NCBI GenBank assembly: GCA_964036045.1
Contig: OZ038378.1
Coordinates: 197,532,001 to 197,596,000, forward strand
DNA length: 64,000 bases
Reading direction: 5' to 3'
Source: Eutreptiella sp. 'Long Island Sound 2002'
Taxonomy: Eukaryota > Protista > Euglenida
The position numbers were made by a program, and so were the translations under genes. Below are positions 1-46,994 of this stretch, piece by piece (position 1 is the stretch's first letter; each line of letters starts with the position of its first letter). Under the pieces are notes generated by a model. It searched no databases. It saw nothing but the letters and a program-made list of their open reading frames with translations, and was not told the origin of the DNA.

Positions 1-1955
1 TTAGTTCACGGCCCCCAATATGTATGCTAAAGCTCAATCCCCACCCCTACTCACAAAAATTCAGTCCTCATCTGCTAGCATATTGGATACCCCTCTTGAC
101 AACACTTTTCCTCTCCTTTGTCAAAGTGAAACAACAGTGCAACATAATTTCAAAACGGGATGCGGCGTCTTAGTAGTTCTTTTGCACATATTCACTCACG
201 CAGTGGAAATGTTGTTCTCTTCATGTGGCCAGGTATGCCAGGCTTTGAAGGAGGCTCTTATGATAGGCTGCTCCAGGACTTATGACAGTTTGATGAACAC
301 CATCAATGCGGACATTGGAGGAGCACCAATTTGCCAACTGCGGTCCCTTAGTGTGTGTGGCTGACATAAAGGTTGGGCACATTTTTCCTAGTTCCAAGAA
401 ATTAGGTGGGGGATTAGCTCATGAGCGAACTCTGTTGAAGATGTGTCGTAATTATTGACAACGCGTACTTGCTGCAATAATGATGGTCAACAACATCGCC
501 CACAGACAACACCAAATGAAAAGCAAGCTTGGATCCCCCCAAGCAAAACTCCATACTTGATGCAGCTTTTACACTGTTACATTTCGGCATAACGTTTCAT
601 TTCTCTTATGCCGACTCATATGTCGGCCTATAGGTCCTCATTCGAGATATTTGTGATTGATCTTTCTGAGCCCAATAGACGGAGTAGCTCGGCTAGCACT
701 GAAGAGCAGTGATTCATTTTTAGGGCCCTTTCACGGCTTGAGGATCAGAGATTTGTGGCACCGTGTGTCCTTTGGTGAAAGCATTCAACCCGCACACCAG
801 AGGCTTCGTATGCCTTCGCCCCCCCCCCCCCCCCAGTCAAGCCCCCTCGGGCGAGAGGGCAATGGCACAATGGCCATCACAAGCTGCTTTGTAGAACAGA
901 CATTGTACACCACAATGCCTCCAGAGAACGTTTCAAAGGTCCAAGGAGTGCAATGGTCCAAGACGTGCACATGAGCTTGGGCACGGATGTCTTGCAATTG
1001 CGCTATGGCGATCGTGTGAAATGTGACATTGATGCACCCCCCCACCCTGAAGCCTGAAGCCTGAAGCCGGCTCGCATCTCTACCGTTCCTGGGCAGCATG
1101 TGTGGCAGTTCAAGATTGTGTGGGACCCCAATAGGCAAATTTGCACTATCTTTGTTCAGCAATAGGGACAGGTAGCAGATTGATGATTCAGTGCTGTGCA
1201 TTGTGAGTATTTTCTTTTTTGCATCATGTGCATGACCCATCAGCATCTGCACATGTCGGTGTGTATCCTGAAGCCTTGTACAGCAAGCGACCGATAAGCC
1301 ACGGATTTTGCCTCGGAAGGGCTTGGTGTGTGTTGTGCAATTGTCCCCCCCCCCCCCCCCACTGGTGCATCACTTGACGCCTCCCCTCCCCCCCAAGGGT
1401 AGGCATGGCATTTGATGTACTAGTGTAGGCTCGCGGTGGTTTTTCTGGCACTGTGTGTTCAAAACAAATGAAGTCGTGTCACTGTGTCATGATCTTCATC
1501 GCTTTGTCGGTGTTGCATGCAATCCCCTTGTTGAGACAGCAGTTTGGTGCACTTGAACCCAAACACGCTAGCAGACTTGAAACTGATGCCATCGATGTAC
1601 ACTTGGAGTAGCTGCCCCCGAGTTTGTGGACCACATGAACCTCCATGTACAAGCAATTGCAATGTGCGCAAACACAACAGTGGATGTCATATTGTTGCCG
1701 AGCAAAGGAACTCACCATGGGACACAAAGTGTTGGAGGGGCCAAAGCGCCACCCCACTAAAACCCGTAGACTAAATAGATACATATTATCTAGGCACTGT
1801 GCATTCCACCCAAATGTTTTGGGGCCGGTGAAATTAACGCGTCATGTACGCCACTGCCTCCTTGTTAAGTTGAAGAGCCGTGAGTGCTCACTACGCTCAA
1901 ACCGCACACAACGTGTTTCACAATCTTAGAGTGTTTGTCATTGTTAGTAGTCACC

Positions 1956-4900
1956 ATGTCTAATGGCGTCGCCAACGAATTGACGGAGGCGGCGCTGCAG
2001 GCACAGGAGAAGTTGGAGCGCCTCTTGTTGAAAAAAAGGATTCGGAATGGGGAAACAAATCAGGTGTTGTGCCTTGTTGCTTGCAGCTTGCCTTGCTTAA
2101 TTGAACTCTTAGGACATGGATCTTTGCAAGTTGATAAATCTTTTCATGATTCCTGCAGACTGAATGCGAATGAAGGGACCTTGACGTTGCATAGGAAGCC
2201 GTTAGGGAACTATTAGAGTTCTTCTTTTGGAATGCACAAATTTACATGGCACCCTTTGTCCACGCATTAGCTATGTACCTGAATGCACGTATGTGGGACA
2301 CGTGGCGGGGTTTGGGGGGTTCCAATGTTTCAAAGCACTACCATTTTCATTTCAGACAGTACCGAGGGCCACGTCCACGACCAGTGCTGGTGTGTCCATC
2401 ACCGCGACCAACACAAGCAACATTGCCGCTGCTGCGCATCAACCGCTTTCACCATCCTCAGCATCTAAACCTAGCCCAAAACCTTGGCCCCATGAAATTG
2501 CGCATCCGGCGGAGTTGGTTCCAGCGCAGGGTACAAGGGATGATGCTCAAGTGCCAAAGGTATGTGTTGGTGTCCATATTGAATTTCATGGAATCAATTT
2601 TGAGTTCACGTGTGCAGTGATTTACCCATTTAGCACAAGTGACAAGGCTTTGCAGCAATCACCGGCATGCCCACGACGAATCCCGCTACAGCCGCGGCTA
2701 CCATGCTGATTCGTACTACCACCCAACCTGAAGTGCGGTCACTGCAACCAATGTTTAGCTCTGACGCTCATCTCGTGATGTTGCCCTTTCGGCAGAGATG
2801 GCTTTGGAGGAGATTAGGGAGCAGCATCAATGGCCAACGGTGTGTGCTTCATGTTTGCATCAAAATCATGTAGATGCCCTTTTTGAGTCTGGCAATGCTA
2901 TCACTTCGTGCTTGCACTCATAGAGGGCACCAACTCATAGCACTCTTTTGTTCTCTTAGTCCACGTCCAGTGCCGGCACTGACACTACGACCGTTGTGGC
3001 CACTCCCAACACACTCAACATCGGCGCTGCTAGCGTGGGCACCCCCGACACCACCACGCCTCAATTGCCATTGCCAAATTCACGTTCTAAAGCCAGCCCG
3101 ATGGACGTGGATATGGAGGAGGCTGCTGAGAATGGAGGGAACGATGTTTTTACCGAGGCTGATGACTTTGCGCTAGTAAGTGCGGCAGACCTTGACCGGT
3201 GTATCAATGTTGCGGGGTCTCATCGGGGATGGCTAAATGCCCAAGTCATCGACTACTATCTGTCTCACTTGAGCTCTGACATTGCTTTTCTTCCTTTGTC
3301 AGTGGCCACAATGCTGAAAAACGGGCCTGAGAAGGTTGCTACCGAGATATTTAGGAAGTCACAATTGCTGGGTAAAAAGATTTTTTTCCCAGTGCACACC
3401 GGAAATCATTTTTTTGGTGTTTTGGTGCTACCCGTTGGACTGGTCATTCATTTGTGTGTTTTCGACTCGGGCCGCGGTGGGGCAGCATTCATCTCTCGGC
3501 AAATGTGTGACAAAATCCAGATGTTTCTAATGGCAAGGAGATCCATTGAGCCGAATGCCCCAACGCTCCATTTTGGTGAAGTCAACATGGTCCCGGTTCG
3601 AAAGCAAGATAATAATAGGGACTGTGGGGTATTTGTATGCTGGTTTGGCAAGCTCCTTGCACATGAACGTTCAGGGATAGTGCCCAAACTGCAAGAATGT
3701 CTATTCTCCCATCTTCCCCTTCGATCAACCGAACTCTTCCCGGATTTCAACCCGACTGCTTTTCGGCAAGAGCTGCATGGGGCCATCTCACGATTTCTGG
3801 GACGAAGCTCCACCCGAGGTACATCCCACGAGAGAAGCCAGTGTAAGCAAGGTGAAGCGGTAGTTGGATATAATGATTTAGTTGAAGCCACACATGCAAC
3901 CCCACCTGAAGCCACGGCTTTTGTCCCTGTCCCAACCACAGCCGTAGTGATAGGCTCAGCCCAAGTACCAACGCCGGCCCCATCCCCGGCCCTAGCCCTA
4001 GCCACAGACCCAACCACAACCCCGGCCCAAGGCGTCCTTTCCGCCACAACCTCCGCCAACGCCCAGACCGCGGTCCCTATACCAGCCCAGGCCACAGCCC
4101 ATGCCAAATCTACCCGGCAAGCCACAATCCCAGCCCTTGCCGCAGCCGCATCCCCAGCCCAAGCATCAGCCGGAGCACCAACCGCAACCACAACCACAAC
4201 CCCAACGCCAACTCCATCTTTGGCCCCAACCCAAGGATCACCCGTCACCACAATTGTAGCCACACCCCAAGCCCTAACCCCAGCCCCATCCCCACAACCC
4301 CCCCGAGCCCTATCCTCCGAGTCAGCTTCAAGCCCAATTGCGGGAATAACCCTAGCCCCCAACCCAGCCCTGGCCTCAACGCTAGCCCCATGCACAATCA
4401 CAACGACAACCCCAACCCTAGCAACCGCCACTACCACAGCCCTAGCCCCATCCTTAGCCCCAACCACAACCGCGGTTCAAGTTCCAGTGCAAGCCCCAAC
4501 CACAACCCCAACCACAACTCCCGGCCCCACCCGAGCCCTGGCCCCGTCCACAATGCCAGCCGCCTCCTTTGCCCCAACCCCAAGTCCATCCGCCGCCATA
4601 GCTCCATCCTTAGCCCCAGCGACAACCATAGCCACAACCGTCAGCGCGGCTCCAGCCCCAGCCCTGGTTGCTATCCCAGCTTCAACCCGGGCCACAACCC
4701 TAGCTCTGGCCACACCCCAAGCCACAACCACAATGCTAGCCCCACCCATAATTCTGATTGCAGTCTCGAGTGATAGGGTTAGGGGACTCCAAGATGTGGA
4801 GAGTGAATTGGGAACACGAGCGGACAGTACGGGGAAGGGGACTCAAAATGGGATGGAGGAGGCCTCCCCTGTTGCAGCCCTTTGTGTCGCCGATCAAGTG

Positions 4901-6508
4901 GCAAGAGGTGTTCTGAAGGTAGGTGATAAGGTTCGGGTTCTTTGGGCTACACCATTAGGTCCCAACAAAGATGGCCCAACCGCTATGTATTTTTCCAAGG
5001 AGGAAAGGACAAGAAAATTTAGTTGGATCTTTGGAAGCGGCAGGCCTGGCGGGGACTTTGTTGAAGGTGTCCCCGTTGGACTCTCTACTATTCCGTGGCC
5101 ATGTTCAGGGGAATGCAAGTTGGACATGGTGTTGGTTCGGGGGCTTTTTTTTGTGAGTGCACTTCGACAAATGGAAGGACAACTTGGGCAAGCAAACTCC
5201 TCCGGAGAATGGGACACCACCATTCGACCTGTCAAGGAGTATTTCAACAACCCTGAGGACGTCATGGCTTTTGAGATGAATGTTCCGAGCGAACGGCTAC
5301 TGAAACTTGATCGACCCGACACTGACCCACTTATGGCGCAGCTTAACCTTGTTGCTTTGGTTGAATACCGGCAAGGTTTTTCCACTGACCTCCTAGCTCG
5401 CCATTGGCAAGGCAACCTCCCTGAGCCTTTGAGCCGCCATGTTGCGCTAACCTTCTTGCGCCGCATATGCATAAACCGCTTCTTGGAGCCGGAAGCACCC
5501 GATGCTTGCACTAAGCCTGCACCAAAGGGTCAGGCCAAGCGAACCGCGCAGGCAAAAGATATGCGAAGAGATGTCCGAGGTACAGGGGGTGCCTTTGATG
5601 GGGTGGGCCACTGCCTTGTTGTCATCGCCCAAGCAACAAGGAGTGAGGGTGGGTTGGAATGGGAGGTTGAGATTCTTGAGGCAGGAGCTGCCACTTCTTC
5701 AGTCATTGGACGAGTGTGCAAGCTCCTTGCCAGCATAGTGCGTAGGGCGGTGCCTGGCGCGAATGTGAAAGTTCAACGCTGGAGCCAGCCCGGCTTCCGA
5801 CGCCAGGTCCCCACGCCTTTGAATCCAACAAAAAAGGTCCGACGAGCAGCAGATGGGCAGCCACGTTGTGGCTTCACTGCAAGCAAAATTTTGGGAGCCC
5901 TAGCACGGGACGGTTTGCTGAATCTCAATGAAGTCACCCAGGAGCGGTACGATGTTTTCACTGTTGAGGAGTGCTATGCACTCCTCGAAAGTCTTCACAA
6001 ATGGATGGAAGGGCTCCTGCTACAGAGGGCTCAGCGGTCTGAGCACTTCTACAAGGTCATGGCAACGTTGTCGGCAGATCTAAAGGCAGCAGATGCGGAA
6101 ACCAGGATTGTTCAACCCTGCCCCGACATTGATATTGTGAGGATGTTAGCAGTGTGCCTAGGGGGGCGGGGGAGTGCCAAACCTCATTTCTTGTTTACAT
6201 CTCCCTCCCACGAGGAGGGAAGTTTCGACAGTTTTGTGAAGTGGTGGCAAGGCACTAGGGCGTATACAAATAAGGAAACATTTGTTCAGGGCATGGCATC
6301 GAATGAGGTGCGGCAGCAGGGTTGGTTGGTTTGGTTCCCCGTGGGTAGCCCCATTTCACCTCAAGGACTTCACCATGCGAAGGAAAATGGGCATGGTGGC
6401 AGCAGGATTGGGGCGGGGAGGCCTCAAAAACTTGCTTATAAACGAAAGCGAATCTTCTCCAAGCCAAGAAAGGGTCATGGAGGCAGCAACATGGTGAGCT
6501 CCAACTAA
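1956..6508 (+). CDS. Spliced Ulp1/C48 (SUMO/ubiquitin-like protease) family gene, about 1286 aa, probably transposon-borne. Exon model 1956-2063, 2356-2559, 2960-6508
   Basis: The 1170 aa ORF contains WLNAQVIDYY, FFPVHTGNHF (His 3407), VFDS (Asp 3464) and QDNNRDCGVFV (Gln 3605, Cys 3623), the CE-clan H-D-C triad plus oxyanion Gln. The start is CACCATG at 1956. Phase-0 GT-AG introns 2064-2355 (CAG|GTGTTG...TTTCAG) and 2560-2959 (AAG|GTATGT...TCTTAG) join all three exons in frame. Confidence 0.8.
3890..4745 (+). repeat. Ala/Pro/Thr-rich degenerate coding repeat (linker) within the Ulp1-like gene
   Basis: Recurrent APSLAPTTT / PTPAPSP peptides encoded by AGCCCC/ACCACA-rich DNA. Confidence 0.8.
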
Positions 6509-7825
6509 GTGTTGCGTAGATTACATTTTTTTTGGCCTTTAGTCAATGACCGCATACCCCTTTCTTGATTTGCATTGTGTGGAGCCGTTGCCCGTGATTA
6601 CACCTATTATGGTGAAAAACCCTCAATGTGATCAAGTGCACCAACCATGTTTCGACCTAAATGGCAAAGAAGGCGTTCGTGTGTTCTCCATTCGCTCCTT
6701 CCACTATTTGTTTTGCATGTTGGCCTCCATTGGCCGTTCGCATACAATTTGTTACATTCGCACAAGGATCAGGAGGTTGCAACATATGTATACTCGATGG
6801 TTGTCCATACTCCACTTTGCCGCAAATGGGATTTGGGTGGTCTTTGTATGATCTGGTGCTAACCCATTTGCCACTTGTCGTGTTGGACGATGGACATGTG
6901 TTACAAATTAAAAAAAGGGCGCCTCAAGTGTGACGTGATATGGTCGTTCCATGAAGAGTTAATAAATTTGCTTAGAATCTTTGCGCTGCACAACCGTGTC
7001 ATGAATTCATGGTTGAACATTGAGCAAAGTTTTGTGAATGGCCCAAATTTCTTTTGTGTATGTGCTTTTTAACCTTTGTAGTGTCATCATCATCTGATGC
7101 ATGTGTTTCCATGCACACCACTCAACAACTCTAAATAGCATCAACGTTCGAACTGTCTGTTTAACGGCTTTGGCTTTGCACTTTTAACGCTTGCAGTGAT
7201 ATCACCATTTGATGCATGGTATTCCATGGCTCACCACCTAGCAACTCTAAGGAGCACAACACCCCCTTGAGCAGGTTTATGGGTTTTGTTTTTTGGTCCG
7301 GTTGGTTAACCACAACGTTGTATTCTTTTCCTTAGATAGATGCATGGACAATGAATGTCATCACTCAGTGCAGTGTTCCTAAAGATTTTTCAATACAATC
7401 CTTGTACATGAGAGAAAATCCCAACCGGCACCATGCAATTGTCCCAAATGCACTTGCACACTTGAAAATTCCAAGCATAGTAACCAGCCATGGGAAATAG
7501 ATGTGAGCAAGTGAGTCACCGATCAGCGTAGCTCCCCCCCCCCCCCAATTTTGGATTTGTGGAGGAAATGCAATCTTACCAGACCTATGGGCGGCAGGGG
7601 CCATCGACTTTGGGGGTTTCCATACCCTCCGGTGGTGCGGGGTGACCCCACGGTTTTTCTATGTCCCCGAATTTGGTGAACATGATGATTGCAGTTCAAC
7701 CAAACCCCTGCTAGGATTAAGGTGGCACCTAGTCAAAGTGGTAAAACTTTGAGTGTTGGTTGTGTTTGTACACTTGTTGTCTTGCCCAAGGTATGTTGCT
7801 ATGACCACGGGCTAAAATTCTTCAT

Positions 7826-8187
7826 TTCCGATTGTTTGGCAGGTTTTGCCGCTCTGCCTGCAATTTTTTTGTACAATAAAGAACGCCTGCCCCTTTTTCC
7901 AAGCCCAAAATTGACGGGTCATTCTTGAAATAACACCCCCTCTTTTTTCTGATCCCCCAAAAGGAGAAAAAAACATCAGTGTGTCTGATTGCACTAGAAT
8001 GTTGCATTCCGATTGTTTGGCAGGTTTTGCCGCTCTGCCTGCAATTTTTTTGTACAATAAAGAACGCCTGCCCCTTTTTCCGAGCCCAAAATTGACGGGT
8101 CATTCTTGAAATAACACCCCCTCTTTTTTCTGATCCCCCAAAAGGAGAAAAAACATCAGTGTGTCTGATTGCACTAGAATGTTGCAT
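7826..8187. repeat. Direct tandem duplication, 2 x 181 bp
   Basis: TTCCGATTGTTTGGCAGG...GAATGTTGCAT occurs at 7826-8006 and 8007-8187, near identical. Confidence 0.9.
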
Positions 8188-8379
8188 GTTGATTGTGGCA
8201 TAGATGCATCCGCTACGCACGGTCTTCGTTACAACCCGGCAAAGGTTTCCGACAATTCAAGACCGTGGGTTTGTGTGATGTTATTCTATGATGATATTTG
8301 ACAAGGCAAGTTGGACGGGGTGGAGGTATGGGATGCACTGGTCCACCCCCCGATTGGGAATGGTCGTGAAGTGTGGGAA

Positions 8380-9800
8380 CGGTCGTTGGGAAATGATTTG
8401 TTGACGAGGTGAGGAATCACCAAGAGTAGCCGCCTCCGGACTTGTGGACCAAATGAACGCACCAAAATGGGGCACCATGTAAGCGACCCAAACACACTAG
8501 CGGACTTGAAATTGTTCGCAACTTCAGAAACTCGCGTTGGGAATGGAAGCGTTCATGGGTCAAGTGGCACACACACTAGCTGCCTCGCAAATGCTGGACG
8601 GAATGCACACCCCACATCTTCACGCTATGTAACCTACCCAAACACACCATCGGATTTGAAATTCTCGTCAAGTGTAGGATCGTACGTTGGGAAATGAATT
8701 GTTGACGTGGTGCGGTATCACCTGGAGTAGCTGCCCATACACTTCTGGATAAAATGGTCGCCGAATGCCCGAAATGCCCGACGGAATGGACACACCATAG
8801 CTTGGAGCCATGCAATCTACTCAAACACAGTGCCGAACTTGAAATTGTCATCAAATGTAGGATTTTGTTTTCGGAAATGAAGTGTTCATGGAGTCAAGTA
8901 TCACTCACAATATCTGCCCCTAGAATGCAGGACGGAATGGACACACCGTACCTTGGAGCCATGCAATCTATCCAAACACACCGCCGGAATCGAAACTGTC
9001 CACAAGTGTAGGAGCTTGCGTTGGGAAATGAAGTGTTGATGGGGTCCAGTAACACCCATAGTAGGTGCCCCGAGAATGGTGGACGGAATGGACACACCAT
9101 GCCTTAGCGCTACGCAATTTACCCAAATCAGCCGCCGGACTTAAAATGGTTGTCAAGTGTAGGAACTTGCGTTGGGAAATGAATTGTTGACGGGGTGAGG
9201 TATCACCCGCAGTAGACGCCCCCGGGCTTATGGACGAAATGGACGCTAGAATGCTTGACGCAATGGACATGTCATATCCAGGCGCTATGCAATCTACCCA
9301 AACACACCTCCGGACTTGACATTGTCGTCAAGTGTACGAACTTACTTTGGGAAACGAAGTGTTAATGGAGTTAAGTATTAATAGCCATAATAGCCATCTC
9401 TTGGCGCTATGAAATGCACCTAAACACGCCGCCGGACTTGAAATTATCGTCCAGTGTAGGAGCTTGCGTTGGGAAATGAAGTGTTCATCGGGTGAAGTAA
9501 CACTCATAGTAGCCGCCCCTAGAATGCCGCACGAAAGGGAGACACCATATCCGGGCAGTGTGGAATCCACCCAAACACGTGAGAGTGAGGCAACACGCAT
9601 AGTAGCTGCGCACAAACATCTAGGCTACATGCACCCGCCATATCCGGGCACTACGGAATCTACCCAAATGCAATGACTGCCTTCGCATTGTTTCTCAAGG
9701 TACAAACTGAATGTGCAGGGGATGAGGCAACACTCATAGTGGGTGCCCCCACCATTTTGGACTGCATGCACCCTTTTATGCGGGCAGTGTGCACTAGCAC
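8380..9800 (+). repeat. Diverged array of the ~150 bp satellite family, just upstream of the SET-RecQ-MULE gene
   Basis: Recurrent GGACTTGAAATTGT...GGGAAATGAA(G/T)TGTTGA...ATGCAATCTACCCAAACAC motifs, homologous to the 20280-25860 array. Confidence 0.75.
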
Positions 9801-9887
9801 TCAAACTTACGTGGTGACCCCATAGATGCGGGGCAAGCATTGGTTCCTATGTCTTTGTCCTCAGTTGTTTTTTTCCTGCAATTTACC

Positions 9888-12800
9888 ATGAACGGCCACC
9901 CTTTGCAAGCCCAATTTGATCTTCTGGTTCAAACCAAGTTGCTACCACAGTATGGTACTGTAGCCAAGCAGCTGGTGGTGAAACCCTCCTTGTTGAATGA
10001 TGCCGGCAATGGGTTGTTCACAAACTGCCTCATCAAGAAGAACGAGCTTGCTACCTTTATGGAGGGACGGCTAATAGCCCGTGATGAAGCAATGGAAACC
10101 ATTAACTCCAAAGGGGACTCATCCTACTACCGTACACTAATCAGGTCTCATGTGCCATTGACCCTATGTGCTTCCTCCACCAAGTTTTGTGGGATTTCAT
10201 CCAATGCTTTTTGCCAATGTGCTCTACATATTCTGCTGCATTTTGCAACACTCTCAAGTGCATTTGACCACCCAAAGCCGGAAGGCGCTTAAATTGGTAC
10301 TCCTGACAGTAGTGGGCAATTACGTTGTTGGCGCAATGGGAGATCTCGCCGGGGAAAACATCCATGCATGACGTGGAGGGCAATATTTTTATCCCGTCCT
10401 TGCATTCGTCCCACATCTTCCACAGTCAACAGTTGGGAATTGATGGTATTCGACAACCGCCTTTGGGCAGGAGTTTTGGCGCAGCATCTTTCGCCAATGA
10501 TGCCGGCAAATTTTGCAATGTGAAATTCATTATTAAGGAATTTCATGAAGGATGTCTACCCGTGTGCTTCTTGCAAGCATTGCGAGATATTAAGCCGGCA
10601 GAGGAGTTATTTGTCAGTTACGGCTCCACCTACTGGGATCGCTCCGAGCACATGGTTACTGTTACAGAGGATCCCAATGGCTTAGTACAATCACACATGG
10701 CCCCCAGCCCTCAACCAAAAGAGACGTCAGAAAATCAGTTGAACAGTCAGCTTGACAGCCACGCAATCAGCGAATCACACAACGAGCCAAGTGATAAGGC
10801 AGCCAGCAACATAGACACCCCTACGAACATACAGCCAGGGGACCACCAAGACGGCCACCCAATTAGCCAATTGGGCAACGCGTTAGGCAGCCGGTCAGCC
10901 AACGGACCTACCGACCAGCCAAACAATCAGGTGGACAGCCATTCACAAAGCCGGATAGATGTTTCGGCCGGTCAGTCCTTGGCGGGTCAAGCACACGGTG
11001 AGGACGATGATGACGAGGATGATCTTGATGCACAAATTGCAGAAGCTCAGCGGCACTTTGATGCTCTACTTGAGAGGCGCGTGCATCTCTACGATACAAA
11101 GATAAAGGTGGAACCTGATTGCTACGATTCGCAACACATCGACCAGGGACCGGATTGGGGCGCTGAAATTGCGGCGGCGGAGCATGCCCTTGGCAAAGTA
11201 CTTTATCCGCACCAAAAAAAGACCTTGCGTGCCCTACTCAACGGCCGTGACGTGCTTTGTGTTTCGGGAACTAACAGTGGCAAGTCACTCCCAGCCCAAA
11301 TGCTTGCGCACATCACTCGTAAACCGGTGATTGTTTTTGAGCCTTTGCGAGCAATTATTACCACACAGCTACAGGAATGTGAACGGTTAGGGATTGCGGC
11401 GTACAAGTTGGAGGCAAACACCCCGTTTCCGAACATCTCCCCGGGTGCAGCTATGGTGTACACCACTCCTGAGAAGGTGTCGTTGTCCAACGACGCCCTA
11501 GACAAGTTGGTGGATTTGGATCCTGTGGCCTTTGTTGCAGACGAGGCTCACAAGGTCGCCCGAAGTGACAAAACATTTGGGCAGCAATGGACGGAGCTTG
11601 GGATTTGCCGACAAAGACTGCCCACCGTGCCGTGGTACGCATGCACAGCAACGGCCACAACACCTGAGCAACAGGCCATTATCGACCGCCTACACCTTCA
11701 AAATGCAGTGAACGTCCGTGGCATTCTCTACCGAGAAGAAATATCAATGGATTTTCACCACTACGCTCAACCGGTGAAACCTCAAAGACGTCATGCTCCT
11801 GAACTTGGTCCTTCCCCTTGTAAGGGGCAAGACATTGATCTTTTTCACCAACGTCGAAAAGTGCACGAACATGGTCAATATGTTGAAGAAGAAGGGTTTT
11901 AAAGTGGCGAGCTTCACTGGTGCAACACCATCTTCTACCCGTGAGGCCGTCCTTAAGGACTTGGAGCAAGGGCTCATCGATATTGTGTGCTGCACTGCTG
12001 CTTTGGAAATGGGTTGGCATGTCCCCGGCTTGCGGACACTCATCTTCACCAGTGTGCCATCCTCCATAACGCAGCTGATTCAGCTATTGGGGCGCCTTGC
12101 CCGCGGTACGTCAGATTGCGGGGAGGTTCACATTCTATACCACCAGCACTCCCTGCGTACCCTTGCCAACTGGCACAAAGACAAGGTCAAGGCCCATGCA
12201 AATTACCACCTCACCTTGAACGACTACACATGTATGTATATGTTGATGCACACCCCAGGTTGCCGGTGGCAGAATTCGTTCCAGCATTCCGACCACGTGC
12301 TGTTGGAGCCTTGTGGCACTCGCTGTGATAACTGCGTGAAGAACAGGCCACCAACAGACGCGGGGTTTGTGCTTGGCCTCTTTCTTCCGGCTTTAGCCTT
12401 GTGCGACAAAAGCGACGGCATTTGCCTTGGGCACTGCTTAGACCTCATTCAAGGGGTGCGACCCAAAGACCATTACGAGCGATATGGGCAGGAGCTTTGT
12501 AATGCTCTCTTTGAGGTGGGCATTGCTAGCCAGCATGCTTGCGGGAGCAAGGGCTCGAAAGACCAATGGAGGGCTGTCATCATGAAAGGCATGGATTGGG
12601 AGTTGGTGAAAGCGATCCCGAACATCGACAGTGTGACTATGAATTTGAAGCTTGGGGAAGTGGAGTTCAATGACAAAGACTCGTACATCCTACATTTGGA
12701 AAAGGCGTTGCCGCAAGCGCCTCAAAATTTAAGTGAGCATGCTGCAGATGCGCTGGAGGATGCCTACCCGCTTCCTATGACGACTGCTGATGTGAAGCGG

Positions 12801-15428
12801 CTATTTCGTGGAACCCTTCTCACTGTAGATGAGGTGCACGCAGCCCAAATCGACCACTTCGCTTGGACTCCAAGGGAAACGCTTCGACTAAAGATTGAAG
12901 CTTGCGTGGTGATGCCATCAAATTCAGAAGTTTGCAACGTGAGCATTGCCGTGAATTCAAGGGGAAGATTGGAGCAAGCAGCGGGGACATGCGGTCTAGT
13001 GGCTGAGGACGGCTCTGCTGCTGGTGGCTACCGTTGCCAGCACTGCTATGCTGTTGCCATGTCCCTCGCACTTGAACAGTGCGAGAAGAAGGTGCCCGGA
13101 CAACGGCGCACGGTGTTAGAAGGCCCATCCACCCGAGCTCAGCGCCTACAAGCAAAGCCAAAGCTCCTTCAGCTTCTGGAGAAAAGGGAATATGTGAAGC
13201 TTGACAAGCCCATTGATTGTCCAAAGTGTGACACCTTGTACGTGGCAGAAGATGTGTACGACTTGCCTTATGGGACCGACGACATACTTCCAGCATCCCT
13301 TGAGCTAACACGGTCTAGCCACGTGAAGAAATATTTTGGATATGATGAAGGTTTTGGCTGCCACCTAGCCTCGCAGGCGTGGACTTGCGCTGGCGCGCTC
13401 GTTTGCAAAGCAAATTCCTGCCGGGCCAGGGACAACAACGCCCAAACCGTGATCTGCCAACATGGAGAAATGCAGAAAAAACGGTGTGACGTCCGCATTT
13501 TTCACCTCTACCCAGTTCTGTTCCAGGGGTCCGTGGAACCTGATGAATACAACCGCCTTCGACTTCTTGCATTAATCCGCAGAGACACGTTGGAGTTGGC
13601 TCCTGGCGATGACCCACCCAGTGTGAATGGTTGGGCTGGACACTCTCACCCAGTGCTAAAAGCCTTCAAGCCGCCTACACACTTGGATGATGAGATCTTA
13701 CAGTGGTTCATTGACGACCCCAATCTCACGCCCCGAGAGGCACTAATGAAGAAGCTGACAACCGGCAAGACACCGCCGGGCGAGAACACCATGTACACAA
13801 ACACCATGAGGATTGAGCAGCTCAAAGAACGGGCTTTAGTGTTGAAGAGGGATGATTATGAAGATGCCCATCGTTTGTTGAAGCGGTGGCTCAAAGACGA
13901 GGCATATTGGCTGCCAGACGACATGACAAATTATCTTCGGTCTGTCAAAACCAACACGCCTGAAAGGCCTGTCTTTGCTAGTGACGGCATGTTGAAGATT
14001 GCGGCAAAAGGCAAGGTTTTGGAGGTTGACATAACATTTTGGGACCATACGTTTATGAAGTACCTTCTCAACATTGTGGTGTTTGACGAGGACTTGACCA
14101 AATGGTGGACCACGTTCCGAATGGCTACCTCAAAGCAAGATGCTGGGTTTTATCATGAGGCATTTCTCAAGTTCCTCGACTTGACAAAGGAGACCGACCC
14201 GAATTTCAATCCTTTGCAGTGGCTAACAGTGGTCATGGATTTTTCGCAGGCCCAGCTCAAGGGACTGAAGTCCGCTCAGAAAGAGTACCTAAAGAAGCAA
14301 AACATTGAGTTGTCCGATGATGAGTTTGAAGCCTTTGTGGTCCGGGTGTTCCAAGGATGCCTACTTCACTTCCTGCGATGTGTGGAGGAGTGGTCCAACA
14401 AGATAGACAGCGAGATTGCCTCTGCAATGTTCAAAGAACGATGCAGGGCCATTCCTTCCATGTCAAAGGAGGCACGTGCGGAGATGTGGGATTGGCTGAC
14501 AAAGCATTACAAAGCCCTTGAGGGTTTCATAAAGTTCTGGCGTGCACCGGAGGTGGATGCGTTGCTTTGTCATTTGCATCAAGGGAAGACGTTTGCGGAC
14601 TGGGTAGCTAGCACGCGGGATAGCAATGCGGTGGAGAGCAGTCATCGACCAGTGAAGGCGAAGGGCAAAAGCTTGGTTGACAAGTACCGTATTGTCACGG
14701 AAACTGATGCCCTAGTTGGTTTGCAGAGGCAAAACGTGGAACGGTACTCTGACACAGTAGCGGATAGGTTTTGGGTATTGCGGACAAGACAGAAGGCTCC
14801 GGCCAAGGAACGACAACCAAGGGGCGACCGCTATGTCAACGATGGGAAACCTAAGAAAGGTACCAAGAGAAAGGGCACAAGTGCCGAGGCAAAACCTCGT
14901 TCCAAGAAGGTGCGGTTCAACGAGGAACCCGCAGAGTTGCATGAGTACTCGCAACCGTCACAAACTCAAAACACACCTGGAACTCAAAGCACAACCGACG
15001 TCATTCCTTCGGAAGATGATGATATGGCCTTGACGCAGAATCCATGTGGTGCTGCAGAGACTCGACAAGTCACATTGAAGCATGTAAAGGATTCACCTCC
15101 CGCCCTCAACAGCATTATGGCAACGTATACCACCGACAAGTCCAAAGTTTGGTTTGCCTTTGCACGGGAAGAGATGAAGAGCGGCTGGAAGGTTGATTGG
15201 GTGGAAAAAATTGAGGGACTTGACGTGCATTATCGGGTTGACAAGCTGGCACGTGACAAGCGTGACAAGGTGGAAATGGAGTGTATCGCTGTGACACAAG
15301 TCCCATTTTCCTGTGAGTGTGGTTTCCGGAACGTAACGGTGCAGACATGCCAGTGTAGAGTGGTGCAAATCACCAAGGACCACCTAAAGTCTTGCATCAG
15401 TTTGGCGAAGAAGCATAACAAGAAGTGA
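9888..15428 (+). CDS. SET - RecQ helicase - SWIM/GCM-like Zn fingers - MULE (Mutator-like) DDE transposase multidomain gene, about 1750 aa if the +1 frameshift at 11777-11779 is corrected. Exon 1 9888-10144, exon 2 10426-15428
   Basis: ACCATG at 9888. A phase-2 intron 10145-10425 (AG|GTCTCA...TTCCACAG|T) rebuilds YYRTLISQQLGIDG. The 525 aa ORF (to 11902) and 1211 aa ORF (from 11793) overlap with a +1 offset in the middle of the helicase. Domain motifs are given in the following features. Confidence 0.8.
9972..10639 (+). other. SET lysine methyltransferase domain (split by the intron)
   Basis: VKPSLLNDAGNGLFT (GxGLF), FANDAGKFCNVKF (NH-type motif with H replaced by D) and ALRDIKPAEELFVSYGSTYW (ELxxxYG..YW). 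Confidence 0.85.
11201..12335 (+). other. RecQ-family SF2 helicase core with RQC Zn-binding motif
   Basis: YPHQ (motif 0), SGTNSGKSL (I), FEPLRAII (Ia), YTTPEK (Ib), DEAH at 11540 (II), TATAT (III), TLIFF (IV), TAALEMG (V), QLLGRLAR (VI), then CRWQ...CGTRCDNC (RQC Zn). Confidence 0.92.
12984..13652 (+). other. Degenerate SWIM-like finger followed by GCM/WRKY-like Zn finger region
   Basis: GTCG...YRCQHCYAV (SWIM-like; the first Cys is missing), CPKC, TCAGALVCKANSC (CxGxxxC) and GHSHP, which is the pattern found N-terminal to MULE catalytic domains. Confidence 0.55.
14010..14660 (+). mobile_element. MULE/Mutator-type DDE transposase catalytic domain
   Basis: VDITF (D 14028), MDFSQAQLKG (D 14238), GCLLHF (CxxH 14358-14369), FIKFW, NAVESSH (E 14634). 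Followed by an NLS-like KPKKGTKRK and a C-terminal CECG...CQC cluster. Confidence 0.85.
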
Positions 15429-18400
15429 TTTCTGCAAGCGCGCTCAACAGTTGCATCGAGGGTTTCATGACCCTTGCCATGGGAGGCCCAAGTGGGCATG
15501 GCAGGTCAACATATAATATGCATCAAAGAATTGAACTCATGAGATTTCGCTCCGCTGTGTTCTTTCTTTTTTGTTGAAATCACAAGCTCGCAGCAGTGGA
15601 CAACCATGCTTGGCCTTGGTAGTAAAGTATAAATTGTGGATCTTCCGAGCACTCATGGGGTTCTCCCAAGCACCTTTGAATCACAAGTTTGCAACATATC
15701 TGCACTGCAAAGTCAAGTCATGCCGGTTGGCACATGATTTATGCATTAGAGGACCAAATCACATGTTTGGGATATTCCTCTCTTTTGTTTGAATGAGAAG
15801 GTTGCAACACCTACGACCGCACTTGCATTTGCTGGTCATTGATCACTCCCATGGTCATGGTCAAGGGAAGATAGGTTCCCTCGAACCGGTTCTTTTTCCA
15901 TTTTTCTTCTTCGCCGACTCCTTTGTCCACACATTCAACCTTATTTGTTTTGCCCACATGATTCAATCCACCCATCCCCCCACCAAGCAATTCATGGGGA
16001 GACGGGAGCTGGACTACAAGAGATGACAGAGGTGCATAGCCATAATGTGAGGACTCACAAGTGCTCACATGTTGTGGACCCCTCATCTATGACGTCTGGT
16101 CCTTGTCGAACCGTGATTGCCCGCTGTGAGCACTTTCGTCTTCTTTCTCCCCTTGTAGGCCATAGTTTTGCTCCCAACAAGTACCTCAATCTCCTCTTGG
16201 GGTGTATTTTGTGGCGGGGACTTCCCTGAGTCGTTCCTGACTGATGATAAGGCCACATAATACTCTTGACTGCGCCCACACTTGTTCCTTGAGCTTGTCT
16301 TTCGAGTAGTACCCCCCCCCCCTACATCCCACATCTCTCCCCGTTACCGTAGTCATCTATGCAGGCTTGAGTGAACGCTTTGGCAATCCCCCCCCCCTAT
16401 TTTCTCTAATTATCGGCCGGTTGGCCCACTCATAGTTCCCCCTTCTATCCCCCCCCCCCCCCCACAATGCGGGAAGCCACCCTTAAGCAGGTTGTTGGAT
16501 CACAATTTCCCTTCCTTCTACCTTCCCTCTTTTCCCATGTGTCTGGCAGCCCACACACTTGGCAACCCCGTAATTCTATTGCTAGCCCCAGGTTGCAGAG
16601 ATGAGGCAATTGAACGTGTGATGTAGCCAATGTAATTTTGTTTCTTGAACTGTGCATTTTCTGTCCCATACCTCCTTGCCGTCACCTCCCCATCCACCGT
16701 GACCCATGCTTTGGGATGTGGGTGAATCTTTGTATAATTGGGTCAGGGACAGTTTATAGTATGGTGTCGATTTATGTTGAGAAAAAACGGTTGCAAAATA
16801 TTTGCGCGAATGGTGGTGGTTTGGGTTCTACCCATTTCTTCACTCGTGACACAACATTTTTGCACTCTTTGGCCGCGCGCATATTCGTTCTTATCAAATT
16901 TCCACTTATCTTATTACAAGAGCATCTTCAAAGTTATAAACGCCCCCAAGACATATGAGCAATTACAATATTTGCGATGTACCTTGGAAATGGGGGATGC
17001 CCATTTTGTTTTTTCTCATCTTGTGATCTTTGAGTTTGCTCAAGCTTTCATGCTCACAGTATGTCTTCTCCTAGCAAAGGCTGTGAGTGCAACCTGATGC
17101 ATTGGCTGTTGTGGAAGTGTGAAAATAGCAAGTTGGCATCTATCCGTATGAGAGGATTCAGCCATATTTTTTAGTGGTGCCTTGTTTCTTTTGCAAATCA
17201 CAAGATTGCATATCCGCCCACAACCGTGTCATGAATTCTAGGTTGAACCCTTGAAAATGGCACAATTTTGTGACCAACCCAAGTTACGGAGAAGTTTTTT
17301 TGTGCATGTGTTTGTTGACATTTGCACTACTTTGTCATTTGATGCCATGGCATGCCACTTAACAACCCTAAACAGTGCAACATGTCTGCGAAACGGTTCT
17401 TCGGTCTCACTGTCCTCTTTAAATACCACCCCCACGCAGTTTATGGCCCACGCGATGCCGGTTCCTAAATTGCAAGAAACACATCACGTGGTGCTGCACT
17501 GCGGTTGGGAGGGCGACACATGGTCAGCAGACAGCATGCACTTCCGCATTTGAATTCGCGTATTCTCATCCTGCGCCGATGCAGAACGAAAGGGTGGGGG
17601 CAGAGGAATACAATTCAGCCACAAATTATAGCAAGCCTGAGGCGCCATGAATTGGCGCATGAGTGTGACAGAATAGCACGTCTGTGGTGACAGCGATAGG
17701 TTAACCAGCTACGGTTGCGATGGAACGTTGTGCATATCCCTCAAGTTTGTGGTGCCCCATACCATTGATGTCCTTGGGATTGGCTACGTGTCCTTCAGAC
17801 TGCAACAAATGCTTTGAGTTTTTGCTTTGTTTGTTTGTGGAGAGTTTGTGTCCCAGACCCGTACACACCCTAATACCCAACACATTGGTGGACTTCAATT
17901 TGTTGCCAAGCGCGCGAACCTGCCACGGGAAATGAAGTGTTGATGGGGTGCAGTAACACTCATCGTAGCTGACCCCACTCGTTATCTAATTCAATAGTTC
18001 ATTTGACCCTGAATTGCCACACTTGTCATTCCCCAAAATTTTGGGCTGAATGGACCCGCCATATCCGAGCACCATGCAAATTACCAAAGCACATTAGCAG
18101 ACTTCAAATTGTTGCCAAGCGTAGGAACCTACTATGGGAAATGAAGTATTGAGGGGGTAAGGTAGAATGAAAAGTGATGGCACGCGGCAGTGGTATGCAG
18201 CAATTGCACCTTGTGGATGCCACATGGACGGCACATCCCGGGGGCCATGCCACTTTTGCTTGCTAGGTTGGGCCATAGTGACGGGCCCTTCCCTAGTAGC
18301 GTTGGTGTGGCTGAAGCATGCCATGGTGCAAGGTGCATTACGAAGGCATGGCACCTATCTTGACAGCGCACGCTCACCGCGAATATGTGTTTCTTCATGG

Positions 18401-21400
18401 CAAGACATTACGGAACTGATCGGCATTGTTTGTTTCACATAGTTGCATGATTGGGGAGAGGGCGCCTTGGTGGATGCTTCTCTTTCACAGGTTTCAGCCC
18501 AACTCTGCGCTCGACCATGCTTAAAACGCCATGAACTTGAAATTAGCGAGCAGTGGACTCAATATGTGCCTATGGACGGTGCCCCAAAACTACGTCCGTT
18601 TTCAGTGCAGTTGCATTGGGAAAGGCCCTCCACACACTCAATGTGTGTGCACGAGCTGGCAACCATCTTCCACAGTTTTCAACCCACTGTAGCATGTTGT
18701 GGGTCACGTACTCCGCGTGCGGTGCTGCATACAAGTCCATTGGGCATTGCAAAGGGTGGTCTCCAAAGAAGCATGCTCCTTAGTGAAATGAGATCTTTCC
18801 CTTTTCTTTGAAAAACCTTTGCTACCCCTCCAATGCAGGAAAACGATGGTGCGCTGCAGCTGTTTCAGAGGAGTTTGCACCACTTTGTGTAGAGGTAACC
18901 CACAGTGTCACGAGAGGCAAAGCCGATATGCCAAATTTTTGTACGTACAGCAAGTACGCACGACTAAAGGACGTCTCGTCACTGCGGATGGAGCCCTGGA
19001 AGGCTCACCTTGATTGAGAGTGTTTTGACAGCGCTGCCCGCCATGAGCTTCTAGAGCTGACACACTCGATGGCACACAAGTGTGGGGAACATGTGCGCAA
19101 TGCATTCCACGCCGTGCATAGCGTGGTTCGTTGTTTCGGGGGGTTGTGTTAGACGTACCGCCTAGAGTAATTTCCTTGCACACCCATGAACAGTAAACCT
19201 TCATTGTGGTCAAAGCATCACTGCACATTTGGACTTGGTAGCTGGTCCGGATTTCTCCCGTCTACTATCCCTACTTTCACCGCTGCCCATTTCTTTTCTT
19301 TTGTGCAGTGGCAGTCTCCCAAATGAATGGCTTCGTCAAGGTTGGTATGGGCAATGCCTATGAGGAGAAGAGCAAAGTGATGGTAGAGTGGCCTGGAAAA
19401 GGCCTGCCGCCACAAAGACAAGCTGAATGCCGAGAGGATGCAGCACGAGGAGGCAAAGGAGGCCCATTGATGAGCTGCACAAAGCCCCAGGCCAAGGCCA
19501 AGAGGTGCTTGGTGTTGTCAGTGGGATCTTTGAACCACCCACTCCTGAACCCTCCTTTGCCTTGGATAATCTGGTGGTGGTGGACTTGAAATTGCTGCCA
19601 AGCCCAGGAACCCGCCATGGGATAAGAAGTATTGATAGGGTGAGGCTGGTCAGGCCGGTCATGAAGGTCCCCCCACGGGGGGGGGGGGGGGTAGCACCAC
19701 ATGATTGTAGCATGAAAACCGAACCAATTCCAATATAACCTATTTTCCTTCGGCGCCTTCAAGGACTGGGGGCCTTGTTGTTCTTGGCACGGGCAGAATG
19801 GGCACTTTTGGGACGGACAACCCACCAGTGTGGTACTGCTTCTATAGCAGAGAATGAGGCGTGGTGGGAAATAGCAGTCCTGTAGTTGAGGGACACCATT
19901 CCCTTACAACCTACTTTACAAATTACCAATCACAACAGCCCCTCATTTCCCCAAACCTTTAACCTAAAACCGCCTGGTACCTGATTAAGTACCTAATTAA
20001 AATAATACCATCGGAACGGAAGTGTTCGTTGGACCGAGAGGGGGGGGTTCCCGCTTTTTTGTCAAAGTGACAATCCCCCTATAGGGGGGATGATGACAAG
20101 GGTGGGGGGTAAGTGAGACGTGGGAGGGGCGGGGTGTACTGTGGCAGCAGAGGATGAGTGTAGAATGTCGATACCCGTGCTCATAGGTCCATCATTGCAG
20201 CCACCCCATTGCTGGCGCTTACACGTTCGGAGGGTGCTCTCCAATACATCTGATGTGCACACTAGGTGAGACGTGAAAGCATGCGGTAACACTCATAGTA
20301 GCTACGCGGAAAACTTTGGATTGAGTGAACCCGCTATATGCAGTCACCATTTAATCTACCTAGACACACCGGCGGACTTGAAATTGTTGCCAAGCGGATG
20401 AAGTTGCCATGGGGAGATGAAGTGTGCGGTAACACTCATAGTAGCTGCCCCGAAAACTCCAGGCTAAATGAACCCGCTATATAGGAGGGCTATGTAGGCT
20501 ACCTAGACGCACCGGCGGACTTGAAATTGTTGCCCAGCATAGGAACCCACCATGGGATAAGAAGTGTTGAGAGGGTGAGCTAATACTCATGTAGCTCCCC
20601 CCCCCAAAATTTTGGGCTGAACGGAGCCGCCATATCCATGCGTTATGCAATCTTCCTATGTACACACCTTGGCTCACTTGAAATTGTTACTAGAGAGGGT
20701 AAGGTAACACTCACAACAGCTTCCCGAAAAATATTTGGGCCGAATGGACCCATCATATCCAGGCACTTTGCAAACTACGTGGACGCACTGGAAGACTTGA
20801 AATTGGTACCCAGCATAGGAACCAACCATGGGAAACGAAGTGTTGAGGGGCTGAGGTAACACTCATAGTAGCCGCCCCACAACTTTGGGGTGAATGGATC
20901 CGCCATTTCCAAGCACTATGCAATCTACCTATGTACACACACTAGCAGACTTGAAATTGTTGCCAAGCATAAGAACCCGCCATGGGATAAGAAGTGTTGA
21001 GAAGGTGAGGTAACACTCATAGTGCTGCCCCCCCCCCGCCCCAAGAAAATTGTGGGCTGAATGGACCGCATCCGAGCACTATGCAATCTACCTATGAAAC
21101 TTCATTGGCGGACATATCCAGGCACTATGCAAACTACCTAGACGCACTAGCGGACTTGAAATTGTTCCCAGACATAGGAGCCCACCATGGGACAAGAAGT
21201 GTTGTGAGGGTGAGGTAACATTCATAGTGGTGGCCCAAAAAGAATTGAGGCGAGTGGACCCACCCAGACACACTAGCGGACTTGAAATTGTGGCCAAGCG
21301 TATGAACGCACCATGGGAAATGATGTTTTCAAAGGTTGAGGTAACACTCATAGTAGCTGCCCCCCCCCCCCCGCCCAGAAAATTGTGGGCTGAATGGACC

Positions 21401-24400: not shown

Positions 24401-25376
24401 AGATTGCACAGTGCCTGGATATGGCGGGACCATTCAGCCCAGAAGTTCCGGAGCAGCTACTATGGGTAATGCCCCGCGTTGTCAACCATTCGTTTCCCAT
24501 GCACTTGGCAACAATTTCAAGTCCGCCAATGAAGTTTCATAGGTAGATTGCATAGTGCTCGGATGCGGTCCATTCAGCCCACAATTTTCTGGGGGGGGGG
24601 GGGGGGGCAGCTACTATGAGTGTTACCTCACCTTCTCAACACTTCTTATCCCATGGCGGGTTCTTATGCTTGGCAACAATTTCAAGTCCGCTAGTGTGTG
24701 TACATAGGTAGATTGCATAGTGCTTGGAAATGGCGGATCCAGAGGGTAAGGTAACACTCACAGCAGCTGCCCGAAAAATATTTGGGCCGAATGGACCCAT
24801 CATATCCAGGCACTTTGCAAACTACGTGGGCGCACTGGCGGACTTGAAGTTGGTACCCAGCATAGGAACCAACCATGGGAAACGAAGTGTTGAAGGGCTG
24901 AGGTAACACTCATAGTAGCCGCCCCACAACTTTGGGGTGAACCTCTCTGGTAACGATTTCAAGTGAGCCAAGGTGTGTACATAGGAAGATTGCATAGTGC
25001 ATGGATATGGCGGCTCCGTTCAGCCCAAAATTTTTGGGGGGCAGCTACATGAGTATTAGCTCACCCTCTCAACACTTCTTATCCCATGGTGGGTTCCTAT
25101 GCTGGGCAACAATTTCAAGTCCGCTGGTGCGTCTAGGTAGTCTACATAGTCCTCCTATATAGCGGGTTCATTCAGCTTGGAGTTTTCGGGGCAGCTACTA
25201 TGAGTGTTACCGCACACTTCATCTCCCCATGGCAACTTCCCCCGCTTGGTAACAATTTCAAGTCCGCCGGTGTGTCTAGGTAGATTAAATGGTGACTGCA
25301 TATAGCGGGTTCACTCAGTCTAGAGTTTTTGGGGCAGCTACTCTAAGTGTTAGTGCATGCTTTCAACTTCAACATC
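14091..25376 (+). repeat. Segmental duplication, copy 1 (copy 2 = 36759-39778 plus 55412-64000)
   Basis: Identical or near-identical ORF translations at offsets 22668 (e.g. stop 15428 vs 38096), 38298 and 38622-38752. Window end 64000 corresponds to 25376. Confidence 0.95.
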
Positions 25377-40310: not shown

Positions 40311-40320
40311 CTCTCCCTCC
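40311..40320 (-). promoter_or_regulatory. Polypurine tract (GGAGGGAGAG on the minus strand)
   Basis: Abuts the 3' LTR start on the minus strand. Confidence 0.85.
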
Positions 40321-43389: not shown

Positions 43390-43409
43390 TTAGATTCGGG
43401 CCACCTCGC

Positions 43410-46990: not shown

Positions 46991-46994
46991 AGTC

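Follow-up and report, generated by a model that had tools for sequence, protein, structure and literature searches.

Introduction

Mutator-like elements (MULEs) duplicate 8-11 bp of target DNA, with 9 bp being typical, and a 9-bp target-site duplication (TSD) together with long terminal inverted repeats (TIRs) is a hallmark of the group (PMC6446971). MULEs and CACTA elements that carry ULP1 sequences are well known from plants (KAONASHI or KI-MULE; melon, rice and grapevine), and the MULEs of grapevine reach 14.4 kb (PMC2528002); those of arthropods measure 1.4-10 kb (PMC13359780). Natural cut-and-paste transposons rarely exceed about 10-20 kb and seldom carry large cargo, their efficiency reportedly falling with cargo size, and no MULE of the size reported below appears in a review of giant transposons of eukaryotes (PMC6431247). 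Here we describe a stretch of 64,000 nucleotides from the euglenid Eutreptiella sp. 'Long Island Sound 2002' (C1:197532001-197596000; hereafter the window), in which a gene for a predicted Ulp1-like protease (gene 1) is followed by a gene for a predicted fusion of a SET-like region, a RecQ-like helicase and a transposase (gene 2). We conclude, with a probability of roughly 0.85, that the stretch with both genes is the middle of a giant cut-and-paste transposon of the Mutator (MULE/IS256) type, one copy of a family that has been active recently.

Both genes lie within one mobile element

Copies of the two genes were sought in the 2.28-Gb assembly (2,317 contigs) with a 401-bp Ulp1 probe and an 801-bp transposase probe, and five further copies of the element, 40 kb each, were taken for comparison (other copies of the family are designated G, H, D, K, L and M, and C-numbers denote contigs). 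The Ulp1 probe detected 13 genome copies at 96-100% identity, and the transposase probe detected about 12. In at least 10 of 13 near-identical (93-100%) copies, both genes had the same orientation and were separated by 10.3-12.2 kb; of the two exceptions named, one was a fragment (C2:112.99 Mb) and the other a local copy that had been rearranged. A preliminary description of the window had assigned both genes to one mobile element and had held that a single-copy or unlinked Ulp1 gene would speak against this assignment; with 13 copies, linked in at least 10, the Ulp1 gene is neither. Moreover, a test for a nested element revealed no inverted repeats of its own around the Ulp1 gene alone, only chance-level matches.

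The alignment of all five compared copies with the window began at base 1 and reached about 28870-29057, with 95-99.5% identity. The right end was base-exact in the window and in four of the compared copies, with unrelated DNA beyond it, and 25 further right ends read ...GCATATGTCATCC and then diverged. In the window copy, the right end at position 29057 reads ...GCATACGTC and lacks the final 4 bp (ATCC) present in most other copies. The left-end sequence, GAGTGTATGG[C/T]GTTTGGACTAAGGGTC..., was obtained from the short two-ended members L029, L043 and L050; when inverted, it matches the right end imperfectly, with about 85-89% similarity over some 125-160 bp, and differs from the right end in the outermost ~15 bp. 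L044 was considered as a left end and rejected, as it is an inverted right-type end cut at 167 bp by an unrelated high-copy repeat. A 32-base left-end motif occurred at 32 sites in the genome and at none in the control. Copies were found on at least six chromosomes, and their flanks were unrelated beyond the base-exact end.

When left and right ends were paired by position, gene-bearing copies measured 40-96 kb (Table 1), most of the size spread arising from a 181-bp satellite in the left arm. One left-end motif site, at C1:197510316 on the + strand, precedes the window by 21,684 bp; with the right end at 29057, the window copy would therefore be about 50.7 kb long. The element had earlier been put at 13.5 kb or more, possibly over 20 kb; that estimate was too small, and the stretch from gene 1 through gene 2 covers only the middle. 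A full element begins with the left TIR (GAGTGTATGGCGTTTGGACTAAGGG...), which is followed by 7 to about 50 kb of the 181-bp satellite, ~4.5 kb of unique DNA, gene 1, an array of a 151-bp repeat, gene 2, a 13.6-kb non-coding arm with 150-bp arrays, subterminal CATGCTAGG repeats and, finally, the right TIR (...CCCTTAGTCCACGCATATGTCATCC).

TSDs were examined by comparing the 12 bases outside each left end, located by pattern search, with the bases outside the paired right end. Exact 9-bp direct repeats flanked seven end pairs belonging to members of 165 bp to 40.5 kb (Table 1), and at an eighth pair 7 of 9 bases matched; the chance of one exact 9-bp match is about 4e-6. One of the seven pairs encloses both genes, and thus a whole unit of at least 40 kb, both genes included, was inserted as one piece with a 9-bp TSD. 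Of the boundaries, TIRs and TSDs that had been proposed as a check, the analysis recovered a common right end, TIRs of ~125-160 bp and seven exact 9-bp TSDs.

The family also contains members without the genes, measuring 165 bp, 577 bp, 1.5-4.6 kb, 11.6 kb, 15.8 kb, 21.7 kb and 28.2 kb. In several of them, the interior has simply been deleted and the satellite runs straight into the last 218 or 977 bp; the internal-deletion derivatives that the family has spawned go down to 165 bp. The CATGCTAGG repeats lie within 350 bp of the right end, and four more occur on the opposite strand within 320 bp of the left end in short family members; none was found elsewhere in positions 1-30000 of the window. 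These subterminal repeats are likely to be transposase-binding sites.

Gene 2 encodes a predicted helicase-transposase fusion

As had been described, both genes are co-oriented (on the + strand) and an ACCATG is present at each proposed start (1953-1958 and 9885-9890). A single frame of 1,703-1,705 codons extends from the SET-like region of gene 2 to the gene end in copies G, H, D, C554 and C598, and the predicted fusion protein has more than 1,705 residues. In the window, the open reading frames 10325-11902 and 11793-15428 hold the DEAD and Helicase_C domains, and an AG deletion divides the frame into 525 and 1,211 codons; the transposase gene of the window copy is therefore broken. An intron at the frame change near 11786 was rejected, given that the 2-bp deletion is peculiar to the window copy. 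The earlier view that gene 2 is spliced may hold for another place, where a candidate GT-AG intron (10145-10425) is conserved. Its donor and acceptor are kept in all five other copies, it would join the two halves of the SET-like region in frame, and exon 1 is free of stops in copies G, H, D and L. With a broken transposase frame, a right end that is 4 bp short and no matching TSD, the window copy is non-autonomous. As a separate observation, the copies at C1:84291660-84295643 and C1:84235645-84239642 share an insertion of ~3.2 kb in the transposase gene and have different flanks; a copy with a broken transposase may therefore have moved in trans.

The SET methyltransferase that had been assigned to gene 2 could be upheld only in part. 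The SET profile (PF00856) scored 14-17 bits against a gathering score of 22.4, and only over the last 25 profile positions. When the exons were searched separately against PDB, the top matches were all SET methyltransferases that fitted the respective domain halves (E about 0.4-1), and the best PDB sequence matches of exon 1 were all SETD7 (E about 0.4); the usual N-H of the SET motif reads N-D in gene 2. These matches are only suggestive of a SET domain.

The helicase assignment held. DEAD and Helicase_C matches span 11204-12104, and in an intact copy (L006:4575-9689:-) the best NCBIfam match was TIGR00614 (recQ_fam; E 2.1e-44, profile positions 14-403 of 470), with a score of 152 bits, which is below the curated cut-off of 219.8. 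No match to RQC or HRDC, which many RecQ helicases possess, was found in the helicase of gene 2. By its sequence, the helicase is classified as RecQ-like. As for the DNA-binding zinc finger expected of MULE transposases (WRKY/GCM1-type at the N terminus or SWIM at the C terminus), Cys/His-rich stretches without a Pfam match occur at 13350-13652 and 15306-15383.

A full HMMER search recovered 57 relatives of the transposase; a word-index protein search with the transposase domain gave nothing, and a profile of the relatives found nothing relevant among PDB sequences. Conserved in the family consensus are D..T, V-x-D-F-S-x-A-Q, G-C-x-V-H and T-N-A-x-E-x-x-N. For the catalytic core, an AlphaFold model based on the relatives' alignment had a predicted local distance difference test (pLDDT) above 90, with Asp746 on strand 1, Asp816 after strand 4, Glu948 in a helix, and a helical insertion between the second Asp and the Glu; a C-L-L-H (C-x2-H) follows the second Asp. 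The best PDB match was the IS256-family transposase of ISCth4 (Foldseek E 2.8e-4; Z 13.2, 12.3 and 11.5). IS256 is the bacterial branch of the Mutator superfamily, and N-x-V-E-S-x-H around the catalytic Glu is typical of IS256/Mutator. Placement of the element in the Mutator superfamily, which agrees with the preliminary description, is supported by the 9-bp TSDs and long TIRs as well as by the catalytic motifs and the structural match to the IS256 family.

One relative, P0004 (1,666 residues; ENA/Logan assemblies), carries DEAD, Helicase_C and RecQ zinc-binding domains followed by the same transposase, and is collinear with gene 2 at 26-28% identity. Because P0004 has the same order, the helicase-transposase fusion is conserved beyond this genome. 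A weak SWIM finger match (E 0.0075) was also seen in P0004.

Gene 1 encodes a predicted Ulp1-like protease

The frame of gene 1 is open over 1,182 codons in the window, C11, C554, C598 and both C1:84 Mb copies. The protease domain of the open reading frame 2996-6508 matched Peptidase_C48 (PF02902) with 33 bits, above the gathering score of 20.7 (E 7e-8), over profile positions 85-187 of 217 only, and the catalytic residues His138, Asp157, Gln204 and Cys210 are present. The domain thus passes the Pfam threshold as a predicted Ulp1/SENP-type C48 protease, as had been proposed. Both long frames, those of gene 1 and gene 2, are open at the C11 locus, in C554 and in C598; C554 and C598 are probably alternative haplotypes of the C11 locus, since the spacing is shared and C598 also shares the flank of a neighbouring element.

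A long Pro/Thr/Ala-rich stretch separates the protease domain from the last ~290 residues of gene 1. The C-terminal domain within these residues has at least 266 candidate paralogs genome-wide (about 28% identity), many of them in frames that run to about 861 codons and contain a single in-frame TAG, and it is multi-copy and probably transposon-borne. Its motif order, His..Glu..Gln-x3-Cys, resembles that of a CE-clan protease and may mark a second such enzyme. An atlas search gave a weak lead to YopJ (0.78), a word search returned a near-identical protein and weak leads only, and a single-sequence structure prediction was unusable (pLDDT 40).

Counter-evidence and alternative readings

Several results weigh against the reading of a recently active Mutator-type transposon carrying both genes. 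Matching 9-bp flanks were absent at seven tested end pairs, including those of the window copy and of G, D, K and L, and the left end of the window copy, 21.7 kb upstream of the window, is placed by the 32-base motif alone. The unmatched flanks are attributed to later rearrangement, a process to which the flank swaps on C15 and the local duplications bear witness; three 9-mers were swapped between neighbouring elements. One might instead regard the repeat as a segmental duplication that holds two genes, with no transposon involved. That would agree with the several copies that lack a matching TSD, and with the element's right part and flank being tandem-duplicated at least five times near the window with identical flanks. 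Against it stand the occurrence on at least six chromosomes with unrelated flanks past a base-exact end, the TIRs, the seven exact 9-bp TSDs, the derivatives that retain only the ends and the encoded DDE transposase. The TSDs refute segmental duplication for the family as a whole, for which we consider it extremely improbable; it stands only for the cluster at C1:197.5-197.73 Mb.

On C15, two elements in opposite orientation, C15:56891348-56891924 (L043) and C15:57504675-57506645 (L031), carry each other's 9-mers, TGCCCAAAT and GGACGTCTG; this indicates either an inversion of about 0.6 Mb by recombination between the two or an assembly error. A similar swap (TGCTTGGGC) occurs at C15:19.315/19.320 Mb.

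The assignment to Mutator also has points against it. The transposase region gave no relevant Pfam match even at E <= 10, and when 39 family members (the query and 38 relatives) were scanned, MULE (PF10551) was matched in five, all below threshold (best E 2.5e-4). Moreover, the lead of IS256 over hAT, RAG and P is modest, at 2-3 Z units: Hermes (hAT) aligned with Z 10.6, RAG1 with 9.6 and the P element with 9.5. The element could accordingly belong to another DDE superfamily that carries Ulp1 or grows large, namely Zisupton/KDZ, CACTA or hAT, and Zisupton transposases can indeed carry Ulp1 domains. However, the TSDs of hAT and Zisupton are 8 bp and those of CACTA 3 bp. The TSD of this element is 9 bp, not the 8 bp looked for in Zisupton/KDZ, and it fits the 8-11 bp of Mutator (PMC6446971). 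In addition, the relatives matched only MULE and Transposase_mut (PF00872, in 2 of the 39 scanned members) and no other transposase family, and the top structure is of the IS256 type. Membership in a superfamily other than Mutator is thus improbable.

The last set of points concerns the place of the Ulp1 gene in the Mutator-type element. No Ulp1 match was found near diverged transposase paralogs (33-35% identity; C13, C4, C17, C9, C6 and C7), and neither a SET nor a Ulp1 (C48) domain was found in P0004. Given these paralogs without a nearby Ulp1 match and P0004 without C48, the Ulp1 linkage is firm within the young family and shown only there. Copies differ by 0.5-4%, and the ratio of nonsynonymous to synonymous substitution (dN/dS) among them is 0.4-1.0, as expected if most changes post-date insertion; it says little about selection on either gene. 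The Ulp1 gene may be inert cargo, a host or foreign gene captured once by a young lineage in the style of Pack-MULEs or KI-MULEs, with no role in transposition or counter-silencing. The paralogs and P0004 are in line with such a capture, as is the dN/dS of 0.6-0.9 for the Ulp1 gene against 0.4-0.5 for the transposase gene in the most diverged comparison, and Ulp1 capture by plant MULEs is frequent and independent (PMC2528002). Other features of gene 1 are at odds with it: the frame of 1,170-1,182 codons is open in at least six assembled copies with the catalytic His, Asp, Gln and Cys intact, and the gene is full-length, co-oriented and no fragment, with its own ACCATG start. Nor is a donor gene visible, as the Ulp1 catalytic domain has no relative in the genome outside the element family at E <= 1e-3 except one marginal match (E 8e-4). 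We consider inert cargo a possible account of gene 1, but not the favored one.

Arms, repeats, local duplications and feature coordinates

Before base 1 of the window, copies G, H, D and L have 1.9 kb of unique DNA in common, and farther upstream (beyond about -1890) they have a 21-bp minisatellite and then more than 7.4 kb of the 181-bp satellite. In copy G, the minisatellite (L004:1890-2553, about 1.9-2.6 kb before base 1 of the window) is G+C-rich, consists of ~32 units and lies between the 181-bp satellite and the unique DNA. The duplication at 7826-8187 was considered as a part of the left-arm satellite and rejected, as it has the same period and an unrelated sequence. The repeats of ~150 bp that had been noted before each gene are present as a 151-bp array before gene 2 (8359-9578), while before gene 1 (1555-1830) only weak fragments of the family occur (1557-1740; 70-86% over 30-100 bp). 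The 151-bp repeat is element-specific, with 61 of 62 genome matches inside copies of the element family, and further arrays of the 150-bp family lie in the right arm at 17890-18164 and 20347-23461 (+) and at 23661-25784 (-). Such repeats are internal arrays rather than marks of gene starts or element borders.

Beyond the right end, the window contains a second, 5'-truncated copy of the element, which is interrupted by 15.6 kb of inserted DNA (39787-55406). The element right end with its flank (...ACGTC|AAAGCACAAT...) occurs five times in 170 kb, namely in the window and at C1:197622549, 197678257, 197706919 and 197730231, and the junction from flank to element position 14091 occurs at least twice. 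The pattern suggests that a local segmental duplication in tandem, with units of about 23 kb, has been superimposed on the transposon. The flank past the right end also has tandem arrays at 30821-33213 (periods 154-199 bp, 86-92% matches), which are unrelated to the element repeats as far as compared, and a 2-kb block between the two element copies (34001-36000) has 74% G+C and a strong AT skew. The main coordinates are given in Table 1.

Table 1. Coordinates of the element's features in the window and of paired ends elsewhere in the genome
Feature	Position	Strand	Size	Remarks
Internal left-arm sequence	1-1955	+		5/5 compared copies align from base 1
Gene 1, predicted Ulp1-like protease gene	1956-6508	+		Proposed ATG at 1956 in ACCATG 1953-1958; uninterrupted frame 2996-6508, 1,170 codons
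Peptidase_C48 catalytic core (predicted)	3377-3670	+		His 3407-3409, Asp 3464-3466, Gln 3605-3607, Cys 3623-3625
Gene 1 C-terminal domain, no family assigned	5573-6445	+		No Pfam match
Tandem duplication	7826-8187	.	2 x 181 bp	Copy number varies among element copies
Array of 151-bp repeat upstream of gene 2	8359-9578	+	~8 units
Gene 2 exon 1, N-terminal half of SET-like domain	9888-10144	+		ACCATG start (9885-9890)
Candidate GT-AG intron	10145-10425	+		Read from sequence; exons joined in frame
Gene 2 main exon	10426-15428	+		Rest of SET-like domain, RecQ-like helicase, Cys/His-rich region, DDE transposase, Cys-rich tail
RecQ-like helicase core	11204-12335	+		DEAD 11204-11665, Helicase_C 11820-12104 (Pfam), Cys4 zinc motif ending CDNC 12258-12335
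AG deletion, window copy only	11785-11786	+	2 bp	Alignment with copies G, H, D, M
DDE catalytic core	14019-14648	+		Asp 14028-14030, Asp 14238-14240, C-x2-H 14358-14369, Glu 14634-14636 in N-x-V-E-S-S-H
Right arm, no long open frame	15429-28701	.		Kept in all compared copies
Subterminal repeats CATGCTAGG x5	28702-28918	+		Within 350 bp of right end
Right TIR and right end	28900-29057	+
Second, 5'-truncated copy, start	36759-39786	+		= element 14091-17117
Second copy, continued	55407-64000	+		= element 17107 to about 25700
Gene-bearing copy	C1:84.22 Mb		39.5 kb	Paired ends
Gene-bearing copy	C1:84.28 Mb		40.5 kb	Paired ends
Gene-bearing copy	C554		about 58 kb	Paired ends
Gene-bearing copy	C1:161.5 Mb		72 kb	Paired ends
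Gene-bearing copy	C23		84 kb	Paired ends
Gene-bearing copy	C2:55.3 Mb		96 kb	Paired ends
TSD CTGTGGCTT	C1:84276795-84317252		40.5 kb	Both genes inside
TSD GGGTGCTGG	C4:141.16 Mb		21.7 kb
TSD CAAAATAGG	C3:117.33 Mb		11.6 kb
TSD CAGCAGAAC	C5:112.10 Mb		11.6 kb
TSD CGCCATGAG	C2:95.2 Mb		4.6 kb
TSD GCGGCCATG	C19:26.8 Mb		2.5 kb
TSD CCTGATGTG	C23:19.6 Mb		165 bp

Discussion

At 40-96 kb, the element described here is among the largest Mutator-type elements known. Its ends, size range, TSDs, deletion derivatives and Ulp1 linkage, together with the frameshift in the window copy, are new, and a literature search found no paper on a RecQ-Mutator fusion, a SET-like fusion, giant MULEs or Euglena MULEs. 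A Mutator-type unit of 40 kb that was inserted with a clean TSD tests the size limit of cut-and-paste transposition, and recent copies reach 96 kb. The RecQ-transposase fusion is no one-off, given that a distant relative shares it. With two ends, subterminal repeats and at least one locus at which both frames are intact, the element offers a defined system for the roles of accessory domains; it also explains part of the satellite DNA of a large protist genome, as well as some of its local segmental duplications and probable inversions.

In the mechanism that we envisage, the transposase part of the gene 2 product would bind the inverted and subterminal repeats, and DDE cleavage would be followed by integration with a 9-bp stagger. 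Speculatively, the fused RecQ-like helicase might assist in the processing or repair of terminal DNA in an element of such length, and the SET-like domain might act on host proteins. The Ulp1-like protease may act on host SUMO or ubiquitin-like conjugates in favor of the element. The anti-silencing role that had been put forward for the deSUMOylase, methyltransferase and helicase activities is hypothetical. A further step would be helicase-assisted Mutator transposition, in which the RecQ-like helicase, perhaps with Ulp1 and the SET-like domain, enables a DDE enzyme to move at least 40 kb. We regard this as unlikely; if true, the limit of roughly 10-20 kb for natural cut-and-paste elements would be lifted, with the accessory enzymes acting at the donor and target sites, on the chromatin or repair proteins of the host.

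The element resembles MULEs such as MuDR, Jittery, Hop and TvMULE in its D, D, C-x2-H and E motifs, long TIRs and 9-bp TSD, and also in having many internal-deletion derivatives and extra genes between its ends. It differs in its size (40-96 kb compared with a few kb up to about 15 kb in described MULEs), in the RecQ-like and SET-like fusion, in a transposase too diverged for the Pfam MULE model, and in internal satellite arrays that extend over tens of kb. ISCth4 (PDB 6XGX, 6XG8 and 6XGW) is a bacterial insertion sequence of about 1.5 kb. Its transposase has a similar RNase-H-like fold, in which an all-helical insertion separates the second Asp from the Glu, but is only 9-13% identical to that of the element and has no helicase, SET or protease partner. 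P0004 is alike in joining a RecQ helicase to the same transposase and, unlike the element, had no SET or Ulp1 (C48) domain found.

In plant MULEs with ULP1, as here, a Mutator-type element encloses the Ulp1/C48 coding region, whose orientation agrees in some families with that of the transposase (PMC2528002). There, however, ULP is in most cases a captured domain of ~200 residues that lies downstream of the transposase, and KI-MULEs lack TIRs, whereas in this protist a separate gene of 1,170 codons lies upstream of the transposase gene in an element with TIRs. As a very large multi-gene mobile unit, the element is also comparable to giant transposons such as Teratorn, Polinton/Maverick, the enlarged CACTA of Chondrus and Helitrons (PMC6431247). 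The RepHel protein of Helitrons likewise joins a helicase to a mobility enzyme, although the Helitron helicase is Pif1-like and that of the element is RecQ-like (superfamily 2). These giant transposons rely on piggyBac together with a herpesvirus, on a protein-primed polymerase with an integrase, or on a rolling-circle Rep, whereas the element has a DDE transposase, contains no viral genes and owes much of its length to satellite DNA rather than to genes.

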